A stretch of DNA of 64,000 bases from Thalia democratica (GCA_965202585.1 OZ241830.1:15810001-15874000); one strand, 5' to 3'. Positions 29,506-58,066 are shown, counted from the first letter of the stretch. The notes: generated by a model from the sequence alone, not told the origin. A program made the numbers and translations.

Positions 29506-32032
29506 CTTTTAAAAAAAATAAAAAGCAAGCCTGTGTTTAGATATCCAAAGCATTGTAAATATTGGTGAAAAGAAAATGAAATTCAGAGTATGCTCGTATT
29601 GTAAAACTGTAAAGTATTACTAAAAATTTCCTAAAAAAGAATTAAACAAGTTGTAAAAAGTTAAAGATAAAGTGAATAAAATGTGTATGTACGAAAATTA
29701 AGTTTACCATAAACGGTTTAGAAACAACAAAAAAGTATAAGTAAGAGTATTATTTACCTTTCGCTAATCAGTCATAAAAGTTTTTGTTATAAGATTGAAG
29801 AGTAGAAAACATGCTATGATGGCATAAAAAAAACCTGAAACCTTTGAGTCAAAAACCCACTTTTTTCTTCAACCCACTTCAATTGTAATTTAATAAACAT
29901 AATACGTTACTTTTGATATATAGATGTTGTATGAAAATCTGGATAATGATAAAGGTTTTAGTTTTAGTTGTTAATTATAAAGCTTCAACCACCGTTTGAG
30001 CGCAATTTACTGTTTTAGTAATTAACAACTCTGCTGCGGCCCTTATATCTTATAAACTTATGAATAATTTAACATTTTTTTTCCTTAAGTTACTAAACCG
30101 TATTAGAGGTGTTTATCAAAAACACAGTCTAAATTTAAAAAAAATAGTAAAAAGCTTCATTAGGACATCTTGAAATTAACAAGTAAACATTTAACACGAA
30201 AATATTAAATCCTTTAGTATAATGAAATTTTCTATACATTTAAGGCGTATATTATTTAAAAAGTTTTTTTTTCTAAAATGTTAGATATTTTAAACTAAAT
30301 AAAACGAAGGATGTGTTAAAAGTATTTAAATTATTTTATAATATACTTATAATATAACTATTTAAATAATAAGCATCTTAGATACATCGATCTCAGTTAC
30401 CATTTAGAAACTTTCTATAAATTAAAAAAAAACATAACTTTACAATTAAAAGTTTTAGAAACATTGTTGTCTAAATCTGATATAATAGTTAGCAGATGTT
30501 GTGATATATGAATATTAACTATAGGTGAATCACTATGCCAATTTTTTATATAATTAATTAATAAAGTAAATAATTTAGACTGGCCTACATTAGGGTCTTC
30601 TAAACTTGGCGATATCTCCTCGAAAAATTGGCTTTTAGTAGGTTAGCGGTAACTTTTTTAATTTCTACTTTATTTTTACTAGTTTGATTTTACTAATTAC
30701 CCCTAAGTGTAAGCTTTTAAAAGCAAAAAAAGTGTGCAGAACTATTTATAGCTTTTAAGTATACTAACAAAAATAAATTTATGTAACAAACAAGGTAATA
30801 AAAATAAATTGTAAATTAAAACTAGGTATAACCATAAAATTTTGTATAGATAAACATTATAAAAATGACTTTGATGAGAACTGGTCGTAAAGTCTATAAA
30901 AGTTATTATTAGAATAATGATCATAAATGGTTTATACTTTAGTAAATTATAACTTTTTTATTTTAAATTTAGTTATTTTCAATAAGCAACCAACACCTTA
31001 TTTAATATTGAATTTGTCACAACGTTTTATGAATTTCACAGGTGCAAATTTTAGTAAGCTATTTAAAATAACATACTTTGTATTTAAAGTTAACTTGTAT
31101 TCCGTTTAAATAAATAACATAAACTTATAGCAGTTTCACAGTTAGTACTCAATTAGATATACCTTTATTATGCAGTAATTGCACTTTTCATTATGCAAGT
31201 CATATAAACCGTCTCATTCTACAGTTACAAAAAGCTACTATTTTTTTAATAATTAAACACAGCAGTAAACTTTGCACCATTTTACTAATTAAGAAACTGC
31301 AATTTTTATTATGCAAGTTTTATTAGCAGTCTCATCGTTCAAAACTGTTTTAAATTGTGCAGTTATAAAAAGTAATGTTTTTCAAAAATTAAACCCAAGA
31401 GTGAATATCGCACTACTTTATCATTTAAATTAAAAAAAAGCTAGGTAAAGTATCTAACAAAAGTAAAATTAATTAAGCTAACTAAAAGTATAAGTTTTTT
31501 GAGACAACTAAGCTTTGAAAGTTCAAAATATTTAACATTAATTAAGTTTAAAATATTTTACTTTTAATATAGAAAACTAACGATTTACACTTAAATCTAG
31601 TTTACTAAGGTGGAACATCATTGAGTAAAATGTTTTTTAATATTTTGTCGATTACCTCTTAAATTTTCCATTAGGAGCCAAAAAAAAATATGCACAGCTA
31701 TTTGTAGCTTTTAAATAAATTAACAAAAGTTAATTTGGATAACAATCAAAGTAATAAAAATAAACTGTGAATTAAGTTATTGTCATAAAATTTTGTACAG
31801 ATAAGTTTTAACTGTCGACAGTGAATTAGAGTTTAAAAAATAGTTTTGAAACTGACTTTGTTTTCATTTTAAGAAAAATAATTTTACTTAAAGAATTTTA
31901 AGACTAAACAACTAAGAAGAATAAAACAAACAAAATAAACAAATTAACTCGAAACTAAATATCTTTCAAGTTTCAACCTCCTCTTATCAAACCTCATTTG
32001 TCTGCATTCAGTTACTTTATTCGATTATACGC

Positions 32033-33577
32033 TTAGACACCCGCATCGTTAGATTGTGACGTCAAACCTGCTTGTGATGACGTAATGTTTAACTGTGACG
32101 TCACCGACGTTCCCTTCAACTTCTGAGGCATTTCCTCACTAACTTGTGACGTCACATGCAACCCATCGTTCGATTGTGACGTCACATGCGAAAGTCCCTG
32201 GCTTTTTTGTGACGTCACAGGCATTCCCTCCCCAAGGTGCGGTGTCGACTGGCACCCGCAGCTTTTGATCCTCACAAATTTTCTCCTCACCCTCCTTCTA
32301 CTTCCTTTCTCCTTTCCTCCGCAACGCAACCTGGCGGTTACTTTTTCGTAATCGTACGGCATGCAGAACGAGCAAGATTTGAAGTGGTCAAAAGTTGAAG
32401 TGTCGACTATTGATTTGTCGTTGGGGATTTTTATCGAGGTTGGGATGAAGAATGAGTTGCATTGTCCGTAGCAGAACCTGTTTTCATAAAAAGTGTAAAC
32501 TTTATATAAATATATATATATATAAAAGATTTATTTAAAGATGCAAAACTCAAAGGACTCGAGTTTCGTGACTATTTACTCATCAGCTTCAAAACAAGTT
32601 TAAAATAAAGCACAAAACAAAATCACTAATGAAAGTAAAAAAATTTTTTGCATAAATAGATTATGACGTAATTTTAAAACTATCAAAATTCATATTTATA
32701 TTTGGATTTTGATAGTTTCAAAATTACGTCATAAACTATTTATGCAAAAATTTTTTTTACTTTCATTAGTGATTTTGTTTTGTGCTTTATTTTAAACTTG
32801 TTTTGAAGCTGATGAGTGAATAGTCACGAAACTCGAGTCCTTTGAGTGTTGCATCTTTAAATAAACCTTTTTATTAATAAAGCCCTCAAGGTGGGCTCAG
32901 TGTGAAAAATTTAGTTTATTAAGTTAAATAACTTAATTCTATATATATATATATATAGATATATCAAAAGGTTTATTTCAAGATGTAAAACTTAAAGGAC
33001 TCGAGTTTCGTGCTTATGCACTCATCAGTTTCAAAACAAGTTTAAAATAAAGCAAAAAAACTATCTATTTATGCTAAAATTTTAACTTTCATTTGTGTGT
33101 TTTGTTTTGCGCTTTATTTTAAACTTGTTTTGAAGCTGATGAGTGCATAAGCACGAAAGTTGAGTCCTTTAAGTTTTACATCTTAAAATACTTCTTTTTA
33201 TTAATTAAGCTCTTAATGTTGGCTTAATGTGAAAGATTTGATTTAACAACTTAAATAACTTAACTATATAGATATATATATAATTAAGTATATATTTCTT
33301 AGTAATAATATTTTTTATTATACATAAAACTCAACCTGTTTCTAATTTTTCCTGTACAAAGACCATCTTCAGTAGTGATAACTTGTGTGACAAACTTCGT
33401 TTTACACCAGTCCTTCTTAACAAGTTTTTTGTTTGCAACCACGAGCGCCTCTTGTGTTGACTTCAGCAAATCCGCATCCTTCCTCCTCGCATTGTACGGC
33501 TTCCAACGACGGGAATTACCCTCGAGTGAGAGTTGAAGTAGAAGGAGGAGGGTCAGAATTAATTTGCTTCTAACCAT
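32033..33577 (-). CDS. grem: Gremlin-like DAN-family BMP antagonist, copy A, 228 aa; two exons
   Basis: Exon 1 is 33336-33577 and exon 2 is 32033-32477 (phase 2, AG|gttgag ... aacag|G). Signal peptide MVRSKLILTLLLLLQLSLEG, then KKDWCKT...NRFCYGQCNSFFIP...SCSFC...RC...SCGC. All nine DAN cystine-knot cysteines are present, with close similarity to the vertebrate Gremlin motifs KRDWCKT and NRFCYGQCNSFYIP. Confidence 0.93.
32549..32593 (-). ncRNA. Minimal type I hammerhead ribozyme with one stem II mismatch
   Basis: Minus strand reads TTTGAAG-CTGATGA-GTAA(ATAG)TCAC-GAAA-C(TCGA)G-TC|CTTTGAG. It is sense to the gremlin A pre-mRNA. Confidence 0.75.
32802..32846 (+). ncRNA. Minimal type I hammerhead ribozyme with intact core
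   Basis: TTTGAAG-CTGATGA-GTGA(ATAG)TCAC-GAAA-C(TCGA)G-TC|CTTTGAG: both conserved core boxes, a 4-bp stem II, palindromic ACTCGAGT stem III, a GUC cleavage triplet (predicted cut after 32839) and a wobble-rich stem I. Confidence 0.85.
32938..32963. repeat. (TA)n microsatellite; shorter tracts at about 32508-32524 and 33266-33281
   Basis: Seen directly; these tracts bracket the foldback elements. Confidence 0.85.
32991..33035 (-). ncRNA. Minimal type I hammerhead ribozyme with intact core and mismatched first stem I pair
   Basis: Minus strand reads TTTGAAA-CTGATGA-GTGC(ATAA)GCAC-GAAA-C(TCGA)G-TC|CTTTAAG. It is sense to the gremlin A pre-mRNA. Confidence 0.78.
33129..33173 (+). ncRNA. Degenerate hammerhead ribozyme with disrupted stem III
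   Basis: TTTGAAG-CTGATGA-GTGC(ATAA)GCAC-GAAA-G(TTGA)G-TC|CTTTAAG. The core boxes are intact but the stem III pair is G-G. Confidence 0.6.
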
Positions 33578-36493
33578 AGTTAAATTAGTTGAAATTTACA
33601 ATACTTTTATTATTCAACCTGTTGAGCAGAAAGAAGAGGTTTAAAAATTACTTCGATATAATAAACATTTAATATAAAGTTTAAATATGTGAGTATCTCT
33701 CTTATAAAAATATTTGTTAATATTAGTACAAATAATCTCTTTCGAATCAATATTTACTGAAATTAGTTTTAAATGGAAAAAAGTATACATTTAAATATAT
33801 TTACTCAAAACCATTTTTGTGTTTAAAAACCAGTTAAAGTTTGCATTTGTTATGGGATAATAAACAATTAACGATATTTTATCTAAAGATTTTCATTTAA
33901 TAAAAAAATCTATGCTTGTTTTATGTAATACATTATCTATATAAACCTTTATGAAGTGTAAATATTAGAAAACACAAACAACTGTTTTTAGTCACTTATT
34001 TCCAAATTCAAAGATAAAACTTACTCTTAAATCTATTTATGTATATTCGAGTATTTAAAATACTTAATACTGGTAAAATAGGTTAAACTTTCCTGTTTTG
34101 AATAACGTTTTTTTAATGCTTTTACAACTAAGAACTTACAATTATAATAAATAAATTGTTTTTTATATACTAGAACTAATGCTTAAAAAACAACGGCTAA
34201 ATACAAATGCTTTTAAGTTTGAGCATGAATTATACTTTTCAATAAAGACACCTATGTAGGCTTCCTGGCAGCTAGTGGACTAAACTATAACGAATAATGA
34301 GAAAAATTATCTTCTTATTAACCAAGGCTCGCATTTTTTCTTCAATAGTTTTTCTCTCGTATTGGTTTTTATCTTGAACATTCTGAGCTTTTTAAATATT
34401 TCAAGTTAGATTTTCGTAAGTCTTCTGTATTAAAAGTTTTTAGGTTAATGTCCCAATTACTAAAATATATCTATGCACTTATATAAATTTAAATTTGAAT
34501 TAACTTTATTATTAAGACTTTGAGTATTATAAGCTTCAAAATTAAATAATAAAGTAAAAGCAAGTATAATGAAATAAGAACGAAAAATGATTTTGTTTTA
34601 AATAATAATATTTAAATTTTTTTATTTGTTACTTCAAGATATATAAATTTAGGTTAAAAAATATTGTTTTAACTGTCGAAAATACATTTTTAATGCTTTT
34701 GTGAACGCAAGTACTTTGAAAACACCTAAAAATCTTTCTACTAATTTAAGATTAAAAAATAATAATTGTTGTTCTTTGAAATTTTAAAGGGATTTAAACA
34801 CTGTTTAGCAGTTTTAAAAGCATTACATCAGTACAGTTGCTTTTGATATAATTTCAGTTTAAAGTATATCATAACAAGCATTTAAGTAGTTGAATAATAG
34901 CTTATAATTACGTAACTACTTAGATTTTATCATAGGCATATGATAAACACAAATATGTTTTTAATACATTTGTTTTGATAACCTTACAGATAACTTATGC
35001 CTTATTTAATTTTGAAAATTGAAAATTATTTAAAAATTATGAAAATAATTTGAAATTATTCATTCTCACTTACAATGACATATAATAAAATTTAATATTG
35101 TAGCTAAAATAAATTAAACACAAATATAGTAGGTTTGTATTACGACTTAGAATAAATTAGGTTTGAAAATAATTTCAAAGTTAAATACAGTTACTAGAAG
35201 ACATATTGAAAATAGATTTTTAAATAAACTTCTTTTTCTACGCTATATACAACTGTAAAAACTTAATATAATAATAAGAACAAAATCTTAAAAATTTATT
35301 TTGATAGAAAAGGAAATTAAATAATTGAAATTAATTAAAATTTATCAAAGCACTTTAACAACTTTACGGGTCAAATCTTTAAATTTTCTGCGACTTTTGA
35401 GAACAGTTTAATATGTTTCACACATTGTTTCAAAAACTACTCCAAAAACAGTAGTAACCTTTTTCAAAACTCTAGCAGAAAAATATTTAACAAAAAGAAT
35501 ACACTGGTATAATAAACAAAATACATGCAGTATGTAATTTTTAATTTCCGTAAAATTTTAAAGGTTTTAACATAAAATACTTTTATCTTTAGTTAGTAAG
35601 CTAATTGATTTTATATACGATTAGATTGCAAACTGAAATTAAAACTTAAAGTATTGAAAAATGAATTGTTTGATAAACTACAGTAAGACAACAACAAATA
35701 CTTTTAAACCGATGTACAGCATACCAACGAAGTACTTAAATAAAAATCACATTCCTGCATAGCAATTGTTAAGTGGGTTTAGAGTTAAAGTTCTACTTTA
35801 GGCGAAGCAAGTTAAACTAAAATAAAAGTAAGTCGTGAAAAAGTTGTTTTTGTTGAAAACTGAACTATTTGTTTCTTAAAATAGCTGGAGCCAGCAAAAT
35901 ATTTTACGTAAAAACATTTTTAATTGGCACCAGTCTTTAGACACATATGTTTATATATGACAACAAATCTTACAAGTTTTTATCTAAAAGTGATTATCAT
36001 TAAGTCGCGCCAAAATTGTTCAAAATGGTTACGTCACTTTTAGTAACTTTTATTCTGCTTTGTTGTAAACTGGAAGTAGTTAATTTTTATTTTTGCTGTA
36101 CAGTTTTATTTTCTGTACAAATATCAATCGTCGAATATGGCTTTATGAGTTACTGCACAAAAATGTTTTTTGTTTTGTTGAACATTTTTAATTTTAATTA
36201 CTGAAAAATAATAATACCAAGTTGTAATAAAGTCAGGGCTACTTGTTAAGAAAGGTTAAAATATCTTAAATTAACACCAAAATGAATTGAATTAGATAAC
36301 GATGAGTCGGCAATATTATATACCGCGCAAGACGACACAAGTTTGTTATTGAAAAAGTCCAAACACTCGCAAATCTGATTAAACGCCAATTAACGTTTTC
36401 ACTCGCCGCACAAAAAACTTTTTAAATATCCAGTCTCGCACGAGGCGTCAATGAAAAATTTGATAAATGATAAATATTTGTTAACACTCACCG

Positions 36494-53287: not shown

Positions 53288-56264
53288 CGGTGAGTGTTAA
53301 CAAATATTTATTATTTATCAAATTTTTCATTGACGCCTCGTGCGAGACTGGATATTTAAAAAGTTTTTTGTGCGGCGAATGAAAACGTTAATTGGCGTTT
53401 AATCAGATTTGCGAGTGATTGGACTTTTTACAATAACAAACTTGTGTCGTCTGGCGCGAAATATAGTGTTGCCGACTCATCGTTATCTAATTCATTTTCA
53501 TTTTCTGGTGTTTTTAGAGATATTCTCAACGAGTAGCGCCGACTTAGCTACAAATTGGTGTTATTAACTTTGAATAAACAAAATTATAACTTATTTAAGC
53601 TTATGAAAAGATTTGTGAAATAAAGTATAAAATAAAATGATTAGTCTGTTAATGTTAAGTTGCAAATGGTATATAAATACGGTTAAAAACTTCCTATACT
53701 AGTAAAATTATAACTGTTCAAAAAAATTACAAACATTTTTGTGTAGTAATTCAATAAAGTTATATTCAGCGATTGATATTAAAAAACGAAACTGTACGAT
53801 AAAAACAAAAATTGACTACTTCCAGTCTACAACAAAGTAGAGTAAAAGTTACAAAAGTGACGTAACTGTTAAACTTTTTTGAACAGTTTTGGCGCGATTT
53901 TATAATTTTTACTTTTTAAAATAAAAAAGTTGTAGAATTTTATCATATGTATTTTAAAACAACAAATGTCTAATGACTGGTGCCAATTAACAAATGTTTC
54001 TACGTAAAATACCTTGCTGGCTCCAGCTATTTCGAGAAAGTCAACAAAAACAACTATTTCAAGACTTGTTTTCATTTAAACATAAACTGCTTTGACTGAA
54101 ACTGAAAAATTGAGCTTTGACTATAAAATCACTCAACTAAATGATCGAAGTAATTATAAAAGCTTGTTATTTATATTTAAGTGCTTCGCTGGTATGCTGT
54201 AAACCGGTTTGAAATTATTTTGCTGATGTTCAAGCTTAGTGCATAACACTAAAGTTTTTTGATTAACTTTACTTTTATTTTAGTATCCAATATACTCGTA
54301 TTTGAAAGCTTATAAGCTAACTTACAAAAATAAAGGTTTTTGATGTTAAAACCTAAAATTTGTTTACTGAAAGTAAAAACTAAGTACTCTAAGTAGTTTG
54401 TAAATTATATATGGTATTATTTTTATTGCTTAAGTTTTAAAAAGTGTTGCTGATGTTTCTATCATATCAAAATAGAATATATATATATAGAATCAAATAT
54501 ACATAAAATATAAGATTGTTCTAAACAGTTGTACAGGTTTTAATCTTTTAACTAATAAGTTCGTAAAATGCTTCGATAGTTTTTATTTTGAATAATTTTT
54601 TGATTAATTTCTTCTTTTGTCAAATTTATTTAAAAAGATTTTTTAAATATTAATTTAACTTTAGTTTTATGTTGAACACTGATTATTAAAGGAACTTCGT
54701 TTGAACTTTCTTTCAAATATTTGTACTAATAGCTGTATGTTCAACTTGACATTTTTTCGAATCTAGTAGTTTACATTGTAATGCATTCATACTACTATAA
54801 TGTTATTTTTTTTCCAGCCAAACCATTTAACTTTATGCTTATGTATTTATAGTTAAGAATGCACGGAATTTTCAAAATGCAACTATCTATAAGATATCTG
54901 TAAGGTTATCAAAACAAATGTATTAAAAACACATAGGGTTTATCATATGCTTATTATGAAATTACGTAATTATAAGCTATTATTCAAGTAATTAAACGAT
55001 TGTTATGATATAAATTAAACTGAAGCTATATAACAAGCAACTGTACTGATGTAATATTTTTAAAACCGCTTAACAGTGTTTAAGCCCCTTATAATCTATA
55101 AAAAAAAATTAATGTATATTTTTCACTCACATCTTAAACTAATAGAAAACTTTTTAATGTGTTTTCAAAAAACTTTTGTTTCTCATAAAATCGTAAAATA
55201 AAATTGTAAATAAGTCGACAGTTCTTAATTTTTTTATAAAGCTCATTTTTTCATATTGACTGACAAAAAATGTGATTTCTATATAATGATTTTTTTTATG
55301 TTGCGGTGTTATGTCATGCAGCTTTTATAAGGATTTCTATTAAATCTTGAAGCTTAAAATATTTGAGGCTTTAATAATATAATTAGACTTTTGAGGTATA
55401 AAACACATATATTTTACTTAGTACAAGTTAGATTTTATATTTGTTTTGAACTTACGTAAAAAATACAAAACTTTGTTTAAAAACCTTTTTGAAAGTAAGA
55501 ACGAGAGAATAAAAAGTTTGGAGAAAAAATGCAAACTTACTTAATAAGAAGCGTATTTATCTTATTTGTTGTATAATTTATTCAAAAGACTGCTGAAAAA
55601 CTGAAACAGATATATTTGTTGAAAAGAAGCTAATAATTAGTTTTTTATTAGTTAATTCTCTATCAGTCTGTTATACTACAACTTGAAGTTTAATAAAATC
55701 TGTTTTTTTTTGCCGTTCGTATAAGTATCAGTTCTAGTGAATAACAAAATAAATTAAAACTAAAATTAGGCGTTTTAAGTTACAACAGTATGAAAGTGTT
55801 TTAAAAAAAGTAAATTTAAACTTGTTCTAGTTAGTACAAAAAACTCTTCAAGCAGATATTTTTAAATAATTCTAGAGTAAGGTTTGTTGTTAAGCTTTGA
55901 AATAATTGACAGACAACAGCTAAAACTTTATTTAAAAAAATTACATCACATAAATAATTACATCTTGATAATCAAAGAATATAAAAGAGTTGTGTATTGC
56001 TAAAATATAGAAAATTATATAAGTTATTATTAAATATAAGTTATTTTACAAGAAAACTTTAAAGAAGGTACGACTAGTTGTTTCAGTATTTATAACAGTT
56101 GCAGTATTAAAATTTAATTTCAGAAACAAAACTAGTTTTAGTTGTATATAGTTTATTTATTTTTGTTTTTATATTCGAAAAGTTTACTGTAAAAGTTTTA
56201 TTAAAACCGTTAGTTAATTTGTATACTCGTTCACAGATTTAAGCATACTAAGAAATTTTTTATC

Positions 56265-58066
56265 ATGGCCAAGATAATTCTGTCCCTCCTCCTTCTACTT
56301 CAACTCTCACTCGGGGGTAATTCCCGTCGTTGGAAGCCGTACAATGCGAGGAGGAAGGATGCGGATTTGCTGAAGTCAACACAAGAGGCGCTAGTGGTTG
56401 CAAACAAAAAACTTGTTAAGAAGGACTGGTGTAAAACGAAGTTTGTCACACAAATTATCACCACTGAAGATGGCCTTTGTACGGGAAAAATTAGAAACAG
56501 GTCAGGTGTTTGTTTATCAACAAAAACATGTTGTTTATCAAAATAAGTAGTTCTTTTAAAATAGTGCTTAAAAGAGCTAAACATTATTAAGTAAAACTTT
56601 AACGACGAAGCATTTTTATTAAAACTAAATTATAACTAAAACAATTAAATCTAAATATTTCAAATGAAAAAAAAAGTATAAGAATTGATACAGAATATTT
56701 TGTAAGTCTAAGAACGTGTAGAATTTTTTTATTTTTCACTAAATTGAAACATCTTTAAATTTTTCTTAATTTAATTTTTTTTTATTTAGGTTAAACTAGG
56801 GTCGACGTGTGATAACGTAATAGAGGTTGAGCAAAAAAAAAACAAATTAATTATATGTTATATTAAGCTTTTTTATTAGTTTTTATTACAAATGTACATA
56901 AAAATACTTTTGAAGAATTTGTTTTGCTTCAATGACTTCACAATACATCACAATACACTATCTCGTGGTTTGAAATAATTAAATGTTAGTTAGTAAATAA
57001 TTCCGAAAATAAATAATTAACCTAACAGGAATCGTTATGACAAAGCAGTGACTCTTAAAGTAATTAAACCAATGTACAACCAGCCTACATACGTTGCTGT
57101 ATTTAAAATAATAAAATATATTTTTTAGTAGAGTGATAAAAAACAAAAATAAGCAAAAAAAAGGTTTAAGTGATAAAGTTAACTTAATTACTTATATTTT
57201 TTATTTTATACAAAATTTTGTAAATTTATCATGTTTTACTTAGTGTGATTCCAGATTATGAAAAATTGTAAAAACAAATAACATTTTTAAGCGTTTTTGT
57301 TAAAATATAAAGTAAGCTGATCATGTGTAGTAAGCTAAGGAATACTAACAATATGTAAAACTGTTGTAAGTACCAAATAAGTTGTAGTTATTAACCTAAT
57401 AAAATATATGTTGATTTTCCGAGCCTATCTAAGTATGAGTTCTGTTAACATGAATTTCAAACACTAATGACAATTTATTCATAAATTGCGAAAGTTATAA
57501 TGCATAACAAAATTACAGGACTGAATTTATTCCGATGTGTTAAGATATTTTTTAAAGACAATATAAAATTACAATTGTTTGTACTTTTACTCTTTTACAA
57601 AATATTGTCATGTAATTTATGTTTTTATAAACAGCAAATTATAAATGATAGATGCAAGAGCTGGAAATTTTTTATTGTGTTTCTGTACTTAACACATTTT
57701 TAATTTAATTGAAAATTTATTATTTTCCACAACAGGTTCTGCTACGGACAATGCAATTCATTTTTCATCCCAACCTCGATAAAAATCCCAAACGACAAAT
57801 CAACAGTCGACACTTCAACTTTCGACCACTTTAAATCTTGCTCGTTCTGCATGCCGTACGATTACGAAAAAGTAACCGCCAGGTTGCGCTGCGGAGGAAA
57901 GGAGAAAGGAAGTAGAAGGAGGGTGAGGAGAAAGTTTTTGAGGATCAAAAGCTGCCAGTGCCAGTCAACACCGCGCCTTGGGGAGGGAATGCCTGTGACG
58001 TCACAATTAAACATTACGTCATCACAAGCAGGTGTGACGTCACAGTTTAACAGGACGGAGGTTTAG
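56265..58066 (+). CDS. grem: Gremlin-like DAN-family BMP antagonist, copy B, 188 aa; two exons
   Basis: Exon 1 is 56265-56500 (donor AG|gtcagg) and exon 2 is 57736-58066 (acceptor ccacaacag). Same nine cysteines and a near-identical core to copy A, with a shorter C-terminal tail. Confidence 0.93.

Follow-up and report, generated by a model that had tools for sequence, protein, structure and literature searches.

Hammerhead ribozyme motifs in a gremlin intron of Thalia democratica as probable passengers of ordinary, Penelope-style retroelement insertions

Four type I hammerhead (HHR) motifs are found in a 64,000-nt window of the Thalia democratica genome (the whole stretch of DNA analysed here), each inside the intron of a gremlin gene, gremlin A. 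Their paired sense and antisense arrangement had led a first-pass annotation to propose a post-transcriptional control restricted to this gene; they are instead the real but ordinary content of a transposon insertion, and not a gremlin-specific control device. With a probability of about 80%, we read the locus as two independent insertions of a non-coding hammerhead retroelement family, made in the style of Penelope-like elements (PLEs) and carried by gremlin A as passengers. In the mechanism proposed here, a short AT-rich retroelement would have inserted twice, independently, into a TA-rich site of the intron. Its basic unit measures about 170 bp and reaches about 235-260 bp where the optional 64-nt 3' tail is present; the family would be non-autonomous, a hammerhead-bearing element of the animal non-LTR retrozyme or pLTR-derived kind, mobilised in trans by the RT/GIY-YIG proteins of resident PLEs. 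The hammerheads of the gremlin pre-mRNA would be passengers that most likely never fold or cut, and the gremlin A intron would be removed normally.

The intronic location given in the first-pass annotation is confirmed by the exons (Table 1), whose DAN-domain halves flank a GT..AG intron running from 33336 to 32479 on the minus strand; two repeat copies, together with their TA runs, fill about 800 nt of its 858 nt. A metatranscriptome RNA contig joins 33333 to 32474 (CT..AC on the plus strand) with the intron absent. The exon junction is thus used by some gremlin of this type, which may or may not be gremlin A, since the contig is 4-7% diverged and could originate from a relative or from the paralog. 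Gremlin A itself is probably transcribed. As had also been pointed out, only one of the two paralogs of the window carries hammerheads: the 1.23-kb intron of the other contains none, and its sequence is unrelated to that of the gremlin A intron.

Table 1. Positions of the gremlin genes, hammerhead motifs and repeat units, counted from the first nucleotide of the window.
Feature	Position	Strand	Description
Gremlin A exon 2	32033..32478	-	C-terminal half of DAN domain and repeat tail; PF03045 E 3e-7
Gremlin A intron	32479..33336	-	GT..AG, 858 nt
(TA)n-rich left flank of copy A	32503..32524	.	similar TA runs beside copies at other loci
Copy A, inverted tail-less unit (left arm)	32524..32695	-	95% complementary to 32700-32871; 4 nt between arms
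Hammerhead 1	32549..32593	-	sense in gremlin pre-mRNA; core 32586->32556; 25.9 bits
Copy A, tailed-unit body (right arm)	32700..32871	+	5' end matches solo-unit 5' end elsewhere (about 32703-32707)
Hammerhead 2	32802..32846	+	core intact; helix I 7 bp; helix II GTGA/TCAC; antisense to gene; 24.3 bits
Copy A, 64-nt tail	32872..32935	+	one end of pair only; two small stem-loops
(TA)n separating copy A and copy B	32936..32962	.	
Copy B, inverted tail-less partial unit, 97 nt	32963..33059	-	90% complementary to 33105-33201
Hammerhead 3	32991..33035	-	sense in pre-mRNA; core and palindrome intact; helix II GTGC/GCAC; 27.4 bits
Copy B, tailed unit	33060..33282	+	older subfamily; best genomic relatives 89-91% identical, start at equivalent of 33063
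Hammerhead 4	33129..33173	+	palindrome of helix III lost (GAAAGTTGAGTC), probably inactive; 23.0 bits
Gremlin A exon 1	33337..33577	-	signal peptide and N-terminal half of DAN domain; PF03045 E 2.4e-4
Gremlin paralog	56259-56498 and 57731-58047	+	exons 95-97% identical in DNA to gremlin A

Exact CTGATGA-N-GAAAC-N-GTC cores were read in the sequence, and recovered by a pattern scan of the window (CTGATGA-N(6-30)-GAAAC-N(2-12)-GTC), at 32556-32586 (-), 32809-32839 (+) and 32998-33028 (-); these three matches compare with 0.00 expected from the control, 100 dinucleotide-preserving shuffles. The fourth core, at 33136-33166 (+), retains CTGATGA..GAAA..GTC, and its helix III reads AGTTGAGT where the others have ACTCGAGT, the palindrome and the C15.2-G16.2 pair being gone; this motif, deprived of the helix III palindrome, is probably inactive. 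All four motifs possess the catalytic core CUGANGA ... GAAA ... UH with the G10.1-C11.1 pair. Helix I is 7 bp long throughout (three pairs being G·U), except for a C.A at its first pair in motif 3; helix II has 4 bp and a 4-nt loop in motifs 2 to 4, and an A·C mismatch in motif 1 (GTAA/TCAC); and helix III consists of 2 bp with a palindromic UCGA loop in motifs 1 to 3 and is broken in motif 4. The predicted cut falls after the C at 32556 in motif 1, at 32839 in motif 2 and at 32998 in motif 3. The 45-nt spans delimited by the first-pass annotation are exact, with 7-nt helix I strands on each side, and the cores are present in all four copies; two of the copies are nevertheless imperfect, motif 1 through its helix II mismatch and motif 4 through the loss of the palindromic stem III found in the other three.

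In the canonical metazoan type I hammerhead, a palindromic loop closes a helix III of 1-2 bp, and activity is expected from dimers only (PMC4209133). Judged from their sequence, the motifs are of this canonical architecture, as defined by Cervera and de la Peña, and they bear out the earlier assignment to the type I hammerheads, palindromic in helix III, that are associated with PLEs and retrozymes. The comparison with Rfam models recommended by the first-pass annotation gave a divided answer: in a 1.8-kb search with Infernal, all four motifs were recognised as Hammerhead_1 (RF00163), at 23.0-27.4 bits and E values of 5e-4 to 1.3e-2, but Rfam at gathering thresholds gave no match over the whole window, the four motifs all lying below the RF00163 gathering score of 34.

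A 183-nt query, made of the arm and tail of copy A, yielded 1,673 first-look candidates in the 802-Mb genome, and the 40 candidates that were scored covered essentially the full query at 97-100% identity, on many chromosomes. The exact HHR core pattern has 623 genome-wide matches, against 0 for the control. Given hundreds to thousands of near-identical copies, there is nothing in these hammerheads that is specific to gremlin. Metagenome contigs, scanned for an exact pattern, gave 0 matches, and parts of the element are covered by RNA-library contigs, which are assembled contigs in which ends, strand and circles are unreadable.

The repeat units are non-coding and AT-rich (29% GC), with no ORF and one type I hammerhead each. 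When the unit was compared by BLAST with 33 loci, the commonest form, seen at about 20 of 29 sampled loci, proved to be a solo unit that starts at the equivalent of 32703-32707 and ends either near 32871-32881 (about 170 bp) or past the tail (about 235 bp, or about 260 bp if the terminal TA run is counted). The relatives of copy-B type are mostly solo units too, starting at the equivalent of 33063. Many BLAST matches had the appearance of hairpin copies with one common junction; these were mostly solo units cross-matched by the palindromic query.

The covariation of stem II between GTGA/TCAC and GTGC/GCAC, already remarked at this locus, holds genome-wide, the fourth pair of helix II being A-U in 305 cores, C-G in 232 and a mismatched combination in only 8. 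This change marks two subfamilies, and it represents one compensatory event inherited by many copies rather than many events; it argues well for the retention of a foldable helix II in those lineages that spread. Between the subfamilies, the 80-nt hammerhead block is the best-conserved part of the unit, its identity of 86-95% exceeding the 72-84% of the tail and the 36-73% of the 5' region. The differences that it does contain leave the structure intact: in helix II a C-G pair takes the place of A-U, in helix I A-U takes that of G·U, and loop II is altered. Along young copies, decay is even. Copy A, which is 97-99% identical to other genomic copies, appears by this measure as a young insertion, and copy B, of another subfamily, as an older one, since even its best relatives reach only 89-91% identity.

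The two tailed units of the window, which differ in subfamily, each have their own inverted arm, and there is no head-to-tail tandem organisation. In copy A, the outer end of the left arm corresponds to 32871 of the right arm. The paired sense and antisense look of the motifs arises because a tailed plus-strand unit is joined head-to-head to an inverted tail-less unit, and this hairpin shape, flanked by (TA)n, is an insertion pattern. Furthermore, the two arms of each pair share identical subfamily substitutions, as would be given by a single insertion event that copied one template twice.

Head-to-head pairs are a minority form of the family, and their junctions and truncation points vary. 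Of the core pairs of C1 that lie less than 1 kb apart, 11 are divergent, at spacings of 61-937 nt, whereas 3 are convergent and 2, about 300 nt apart, are in tandem; random orientation would give divergent, convergent and tandem pairs at about 1:1:2. The arms measure about 111 nt in L002 and L004, are asymmetric in L005, L028 and L073, and are full-length around a 27-nt spacer in L018; in L075, arms of 247 nt surround 153 nt of extra 5' sequence. In all 11 of the head-to-head pairs examined, both window pairs included, exactly one partner is tailed and the other ends near 32871-32881, and solo units are found with either 3' end. Counted from the predicted hammerhead cut, one of these 3' ends is reached after 32 nt and the other after 96 nt. 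The units have a common 3' end and a variable 5' extent, and TA runs stand at both ends of the insertions, here and also at other loci.

At the RNA level, the intron is predicted to fold into two very long hairpins, at -405.3 kcal/mol (shuffles average -134.5; z = -41). The insertion might consequently be thought to matter through double-stranded RNA, the 97-172-bp hairpins being diced or edited and acting either in trans on the family or on the kinetics of gremlin A splicing. We regard this as unlikely. The extreme predicted stability of the hairpins speaks for it, as does the gremlin-like spliced RNA contig, with a gene that is probably transcribed; a third argument, the matches to plant miRNA precursor models, loses its value in that these were obtained at relaxed Rfam thresholds, lie far below the cut-offs and reflect only the generic shape of a long hairpin. 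Moreover, there are hundreds of similar hairpin copies, among which the gremlin one is not singled out.

The same geometry recalls a foldback or MITE-type DNA transposon, with long terminal inverted repeats and insertion at TA, of which the hammerheads would be incidental passengers. The near-perfect 172-nt inverted arms and the TA-rich flanks on both sides would fit such an origin, to which we nevertheless attach very little weight: most copies are solo, with no inverted partner, so that inverted termini are unnecessary for spread; the junction positions vary between pairs; the outer ends are not equivalent, the tail being present on one side only; and a common 3' end with a variable 5' extent is typical of reverse transcription. 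Terminal inverted repeats with equivalent ends on every copy, by which a MITE or foldback element would be identified, are not found in this family.

The preferred reading, that of retroelement insertion in the style of PLEs, accounts for these features through what has been described for PLEs elsewhere. Their insertions contain a pLTR hammerhead, an inverted 5'-truncated copy upstream and a tail at one end, with a bias to (TA)n (PMC8557442). At AT-rich sites, both strands of the DNA are cut by a purified PLE protein, which also extends them, and it starts RT at two internal sites about 90 nt past the hammerhead cut, the stretch between them constituting the tail (PMC11167929). The element presents the inverted 5'-truncated copy with variable junctions, the one-end tail, the two 3' ends and the (TA)n target; because the inverted 5' copy, the tail at one end and the (TA)n ends match the PLE signature, the family is taken as PLE-mobilised.

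PLEs are abundant in the T. democratica genome, as judged from ORFs assigned by their YIDD and GIY..YIG motifs; Pfam found the GIY-YIG domain as the only domain of the PLE ORF, the RT domain being undetected, and a PDB sequence search of the ORF brought up nothing, while its Atlas neighbours provide a lead only. The sampled PLE family forms a 5'-truncation series with a common 3' end. Resident PLEs also make head-to-head inverted copies, exemplified by a 4.77-kb, 99% palindrome in L080 and, in L077, by a 378-nt inverted 3' fragment that abuts the 5' end, and partial tandems also occur. The inverted arrangement had been described as PLE-like in the first-pass annotation, and the similar inverted pairs of resident PLEs bear this out. 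A second set of PLE ORFs is 40-42% identical to the first, with open frames of about 850-960 aa, some of them in 3.6-kb tandems. Tandem PLE ORFs of about 960 aa, with spacers of about 0.7-1.2 kb, occupy C7:24117729-24127369, C10:37044023-37050214 and C2:69742929-69749062, and an inverted pair is located at C8:48237355-48243298.

No RT/GIY-YIG ORF lies in or beside the element. In one sampled PLE family, neither a hammerhead nor any similarity to the element turned up at twelve GIY-YIG loci of 3 kb and five PLE loci of 10 kb, and none of the PLE ORFs listed on C1, C2 and C4 falls within a few kb of a listed core match. A genome-wide search for the element and for a parent, suggested earlier, was thus answered for its first part, with more than 1,600 candidate copies, and not for its second, no parent being present among the sampled RT/GIY-YIG loci. 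Since no homology to a resident PLE was found, it is from the shape of the insertions that we infer mobilisation by a PLE enzyme. Any ribozyme activity of the hammerheads is likewise putative.

The kinds closest to the gremlin intron element are the animal non-LTR retrozymes and PLE pLTR-derived fragments. The former (Cervera and de la Peña, 2020, PMC7229834; Li, Clavereau and Pollet, 2026) are alike in being short (150-450 bp), AT-rich and non-coding, in carrying one type I hammerhead with a short palindromic helix III, in being high-copy, species-specific, often monomeric and often intronic, and in their supposed dependence on PLE enzymes. Animal retrozymes have been argued to derive from PLE pLTRs, with monomers making up anything from none (0) to all (1) of the copies, and with about 43% of the Xenopus copies in introns (bioRxiv 10.64898/2026.07.22.740005). 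Retrozymes differ, however, in that they are defined by head-to-tail tandem arrays giving circular RNAs, whereas the T. democratica family is mostly solo and head-to-head, with a tandem layout in only 2 of the 16 close pairs.

The same genome also has a separate, classical family of hammerheads in 327-328-bp tandem arrays, whose scores of 33-43 bits nearly always exceed the Rfam cut-off and whose sequence has no relation to that of the gremlin intron element. The two right arms in the intron happen to be spaced by 327 bp. This was considered as a link to the tandem arrays and set aside as a coincidence, the arrays being unrelated in sequence.

With PLE pLTRs (Craig et al., 2021, PMC8557442; Frangieh et al., 2024, PMC11167929) the element has in common a terminal-repeat hammerhead, an inverted 5'-truncated upstream copy, an optional tail at one end, AT-rich or (TA)n targets and two alternative 3' ends past the hammerhead. 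It departs from them in that no RT/GIY-YIG ORF adjoins it and no homology could be detected between it and the resident PLE family that was sampled; moreover, its tail measures 64 nt, against 30-40 nt in PLEs, and its hammerhead is of the canonical type with a 4-bp helix II, whereas many PLEs carry a 'min-HHR'. More tentatively, the family may be a SINE-like partner of PLEs that spreads at (TA)n in linear form, as solo units or head-to-head pairs, and has no tandem-array and circular-RNA cycle. If so, the hammerhead block would owe its retention to recognition by the enzyme or to processing assisted by protein, rather than to the production of circles. The long hairpins thus left in introns might, in addition, feed a small-RNA response against the family.

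The amniote HH9 and HH10 intronic hammerheads, which de la Peña and Garcia-Robles are said to have described in 2010, are reportedly single-copy, conserved across orthologs and able to fold as monomers. Like them, the gremlin motifs include a sense-strand type I hammerhead within an intron of a protein-coding gene. Unlike them, they are young transposon copies, absent from the paralog, whose folding requires a partner and which an antisense arm masks.

This need for a partner is also apparent in predicted folds. The minimum-energy fold of isolated 58-nt hammerhead segments, taken as monomers, is not a hammerhead, and their energies are no better than those of shuffles; two copies of motif 3 co-fold, at -27.3 kcal/mol, as a double hammerhead in which the intermolecular helix III is 8 bp long. 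In the minus-strand pre-mRNA, motif 3 comes first and motif 1 second, 442 nt apart within one transcript, and the complement of motif 4 precedes motif 3 as that of motif 2 precedes motif 1, in agreement with the earlier statement that the transcript contains two sense ribozymes, each preceded by its antisense arm. Both sense HHRs originate from inverted arms that have no tail, and each is predicted to sit in a 97-172-bp hairpin with a complementary arm that is transcribed first. The release of both sense segments from these hairpins would cost about 187 kcal/mol, and the double hammerhead would return only about -26 to -31 kcal/mol.

Sequestration of the ribozymes and formation of a dimer able to cut the intron had been presented as alternative fates. 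The first is predicted to be strongly favoured over the dimer hammerhead in the gremlin pre-mRNA, as expected when opening the hairpins costs far more than the dimer gains and the complementary arm is made first; the second, with its cutting, would be very unlikely. On the same modelling, sequestration would be expected likewise in transcripts of the opposite strand. The supposed paralog-specific post-transcriptional switch, in which the two sense hammerheads would pair via helix III and cleave the pre-mRNA so that less gremlin A is produced, with the antisense arms tuning the effect, is accordingly hardly tenable: two sense motifs with a common ACUCGAGU palindrome do occur in one transcript, the predicted dimer of motif 3 is a double hammerhead and the paralog is without hammerheads, but the copies come from a common repeat and are ordinary members of a family with more than 600 cores, copy A is young and its motif 1 has a helix II mismatch, the sense motifs are predicted to be locked in hairpins behind the opening cost given above, and minimal metazoan hammerheads cleave poorly, dimers included (PMC4209133).

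For gremlin or BMP biology, the insertion adds nothing specific. For annotation, the lesson is that sense and antisense hammerheads within an intron may resemble a designed switch and yet be a routine product of the insertion of a hammerhead retroelement. The locus constitutes a clean, small example of Penelope-style architecture on a unit of only about 200 bp, and the family could be used as a compact substrate for testing the priming of PLE enzymes on both strands.

Directly past the (TA)n that adjoins tail-less arms of the window element, the hammerhead-bearing repeat carried by the gremlin A intron, the sequence AATTTATTGAAATGGCGATTTTAAAAAT..CTGG.. was found at four independent loci (L005, L007, L011 and L029). 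This shared stretch represents either a separate repeat that likewise seeks (TA)n or an additional module of the element itself. At locus L073, a 299-bp tandem has window-type hammerheads interleaved with a different, second hammerhead-like motif (CTGAKGA-CGCG..CGCA-GAAAC-AGCTGTA, with the palindrome ACAGCTGT), whose copies lie about 107 and 87 nt downstream of the two window-type cores, respectively.

Type I hammerheads also occur in every unit of large tandem arrays of the genome. Their scores range from 33 to 43 bits and almost all exceed the Rfam cut-off, with ACCGGU as the helix III palindrome. These arrays are a classical retrozyme or satellite family that bears no sequence relationship to the window element.

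Among the Penelope-like elements, the near-perfect palindrome at locus L080 consists of two 5'-truncated ORF copies arranged head-to-head, and at L077 a 918-aa ORF copy carries an inverted 378-nt 3' fragment at its 5' end. In a second family, 40-42% identical to the first, to which these two loci belong, the ORFs (about 860-960 aa) are intact and form head-to-tail tandems that repeat roughly every 3.6-3.7 kb.

Coordinates of the repeats and gremlin features in the Thalia democratica assembly
Feature	Locus or window position	Contig position
Palindrome, 4.77 kb, 99% self-complementary	L080:4052-8815	C5:59770051-59774814
Second Penelope-like family, tandem sets		C7:24117729-24127369; C10:37044023-37050214; C2:69742929-69749062
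Large tandem arrays, period 327-328 bp	L031-L060	C1:105486267-105551147; C73:5057-57503
Second hammerhead-like motif	L073:956-989; 1235-1268	C1:114685255-114685567
TGTGACGTCA, five to six copies, coding C-terminal tail, gremlin A exon 2	window 32044-32230	
Gremlin paralog exon alignments	window 33334-33561 vs 56502-56275; 32207-32482 vs 58006-57731	

At the RNA level, a spliced gremlin-like contig of 818 nt from a 2016 marine metatranscriptome (run X1) aligns to window positions 32001-32474 and 33333-33580 with 4-7% divergence, and the window repeat is partly covered by RNA-library contigs at 90-99% identity. The gremlin A tail contains a CRE-like palindrome, TGTGACGTCA, whose copies, 30-51 nt apart (repeat families D3, D5 and D6), encode VTSQ repeats.

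The coding exons of the two gremlin paralogs share 95-97% DNA identity. At each of the two exon-intron boundaries this similarity breaks off no more than about 4 nt away, and at the CDS start it gives out about 16 nt into the coding sequence; introns and flanks are unrelated. The comparison suggests that the pair was shaped by exon-limited gene conversion or by intron replacement.
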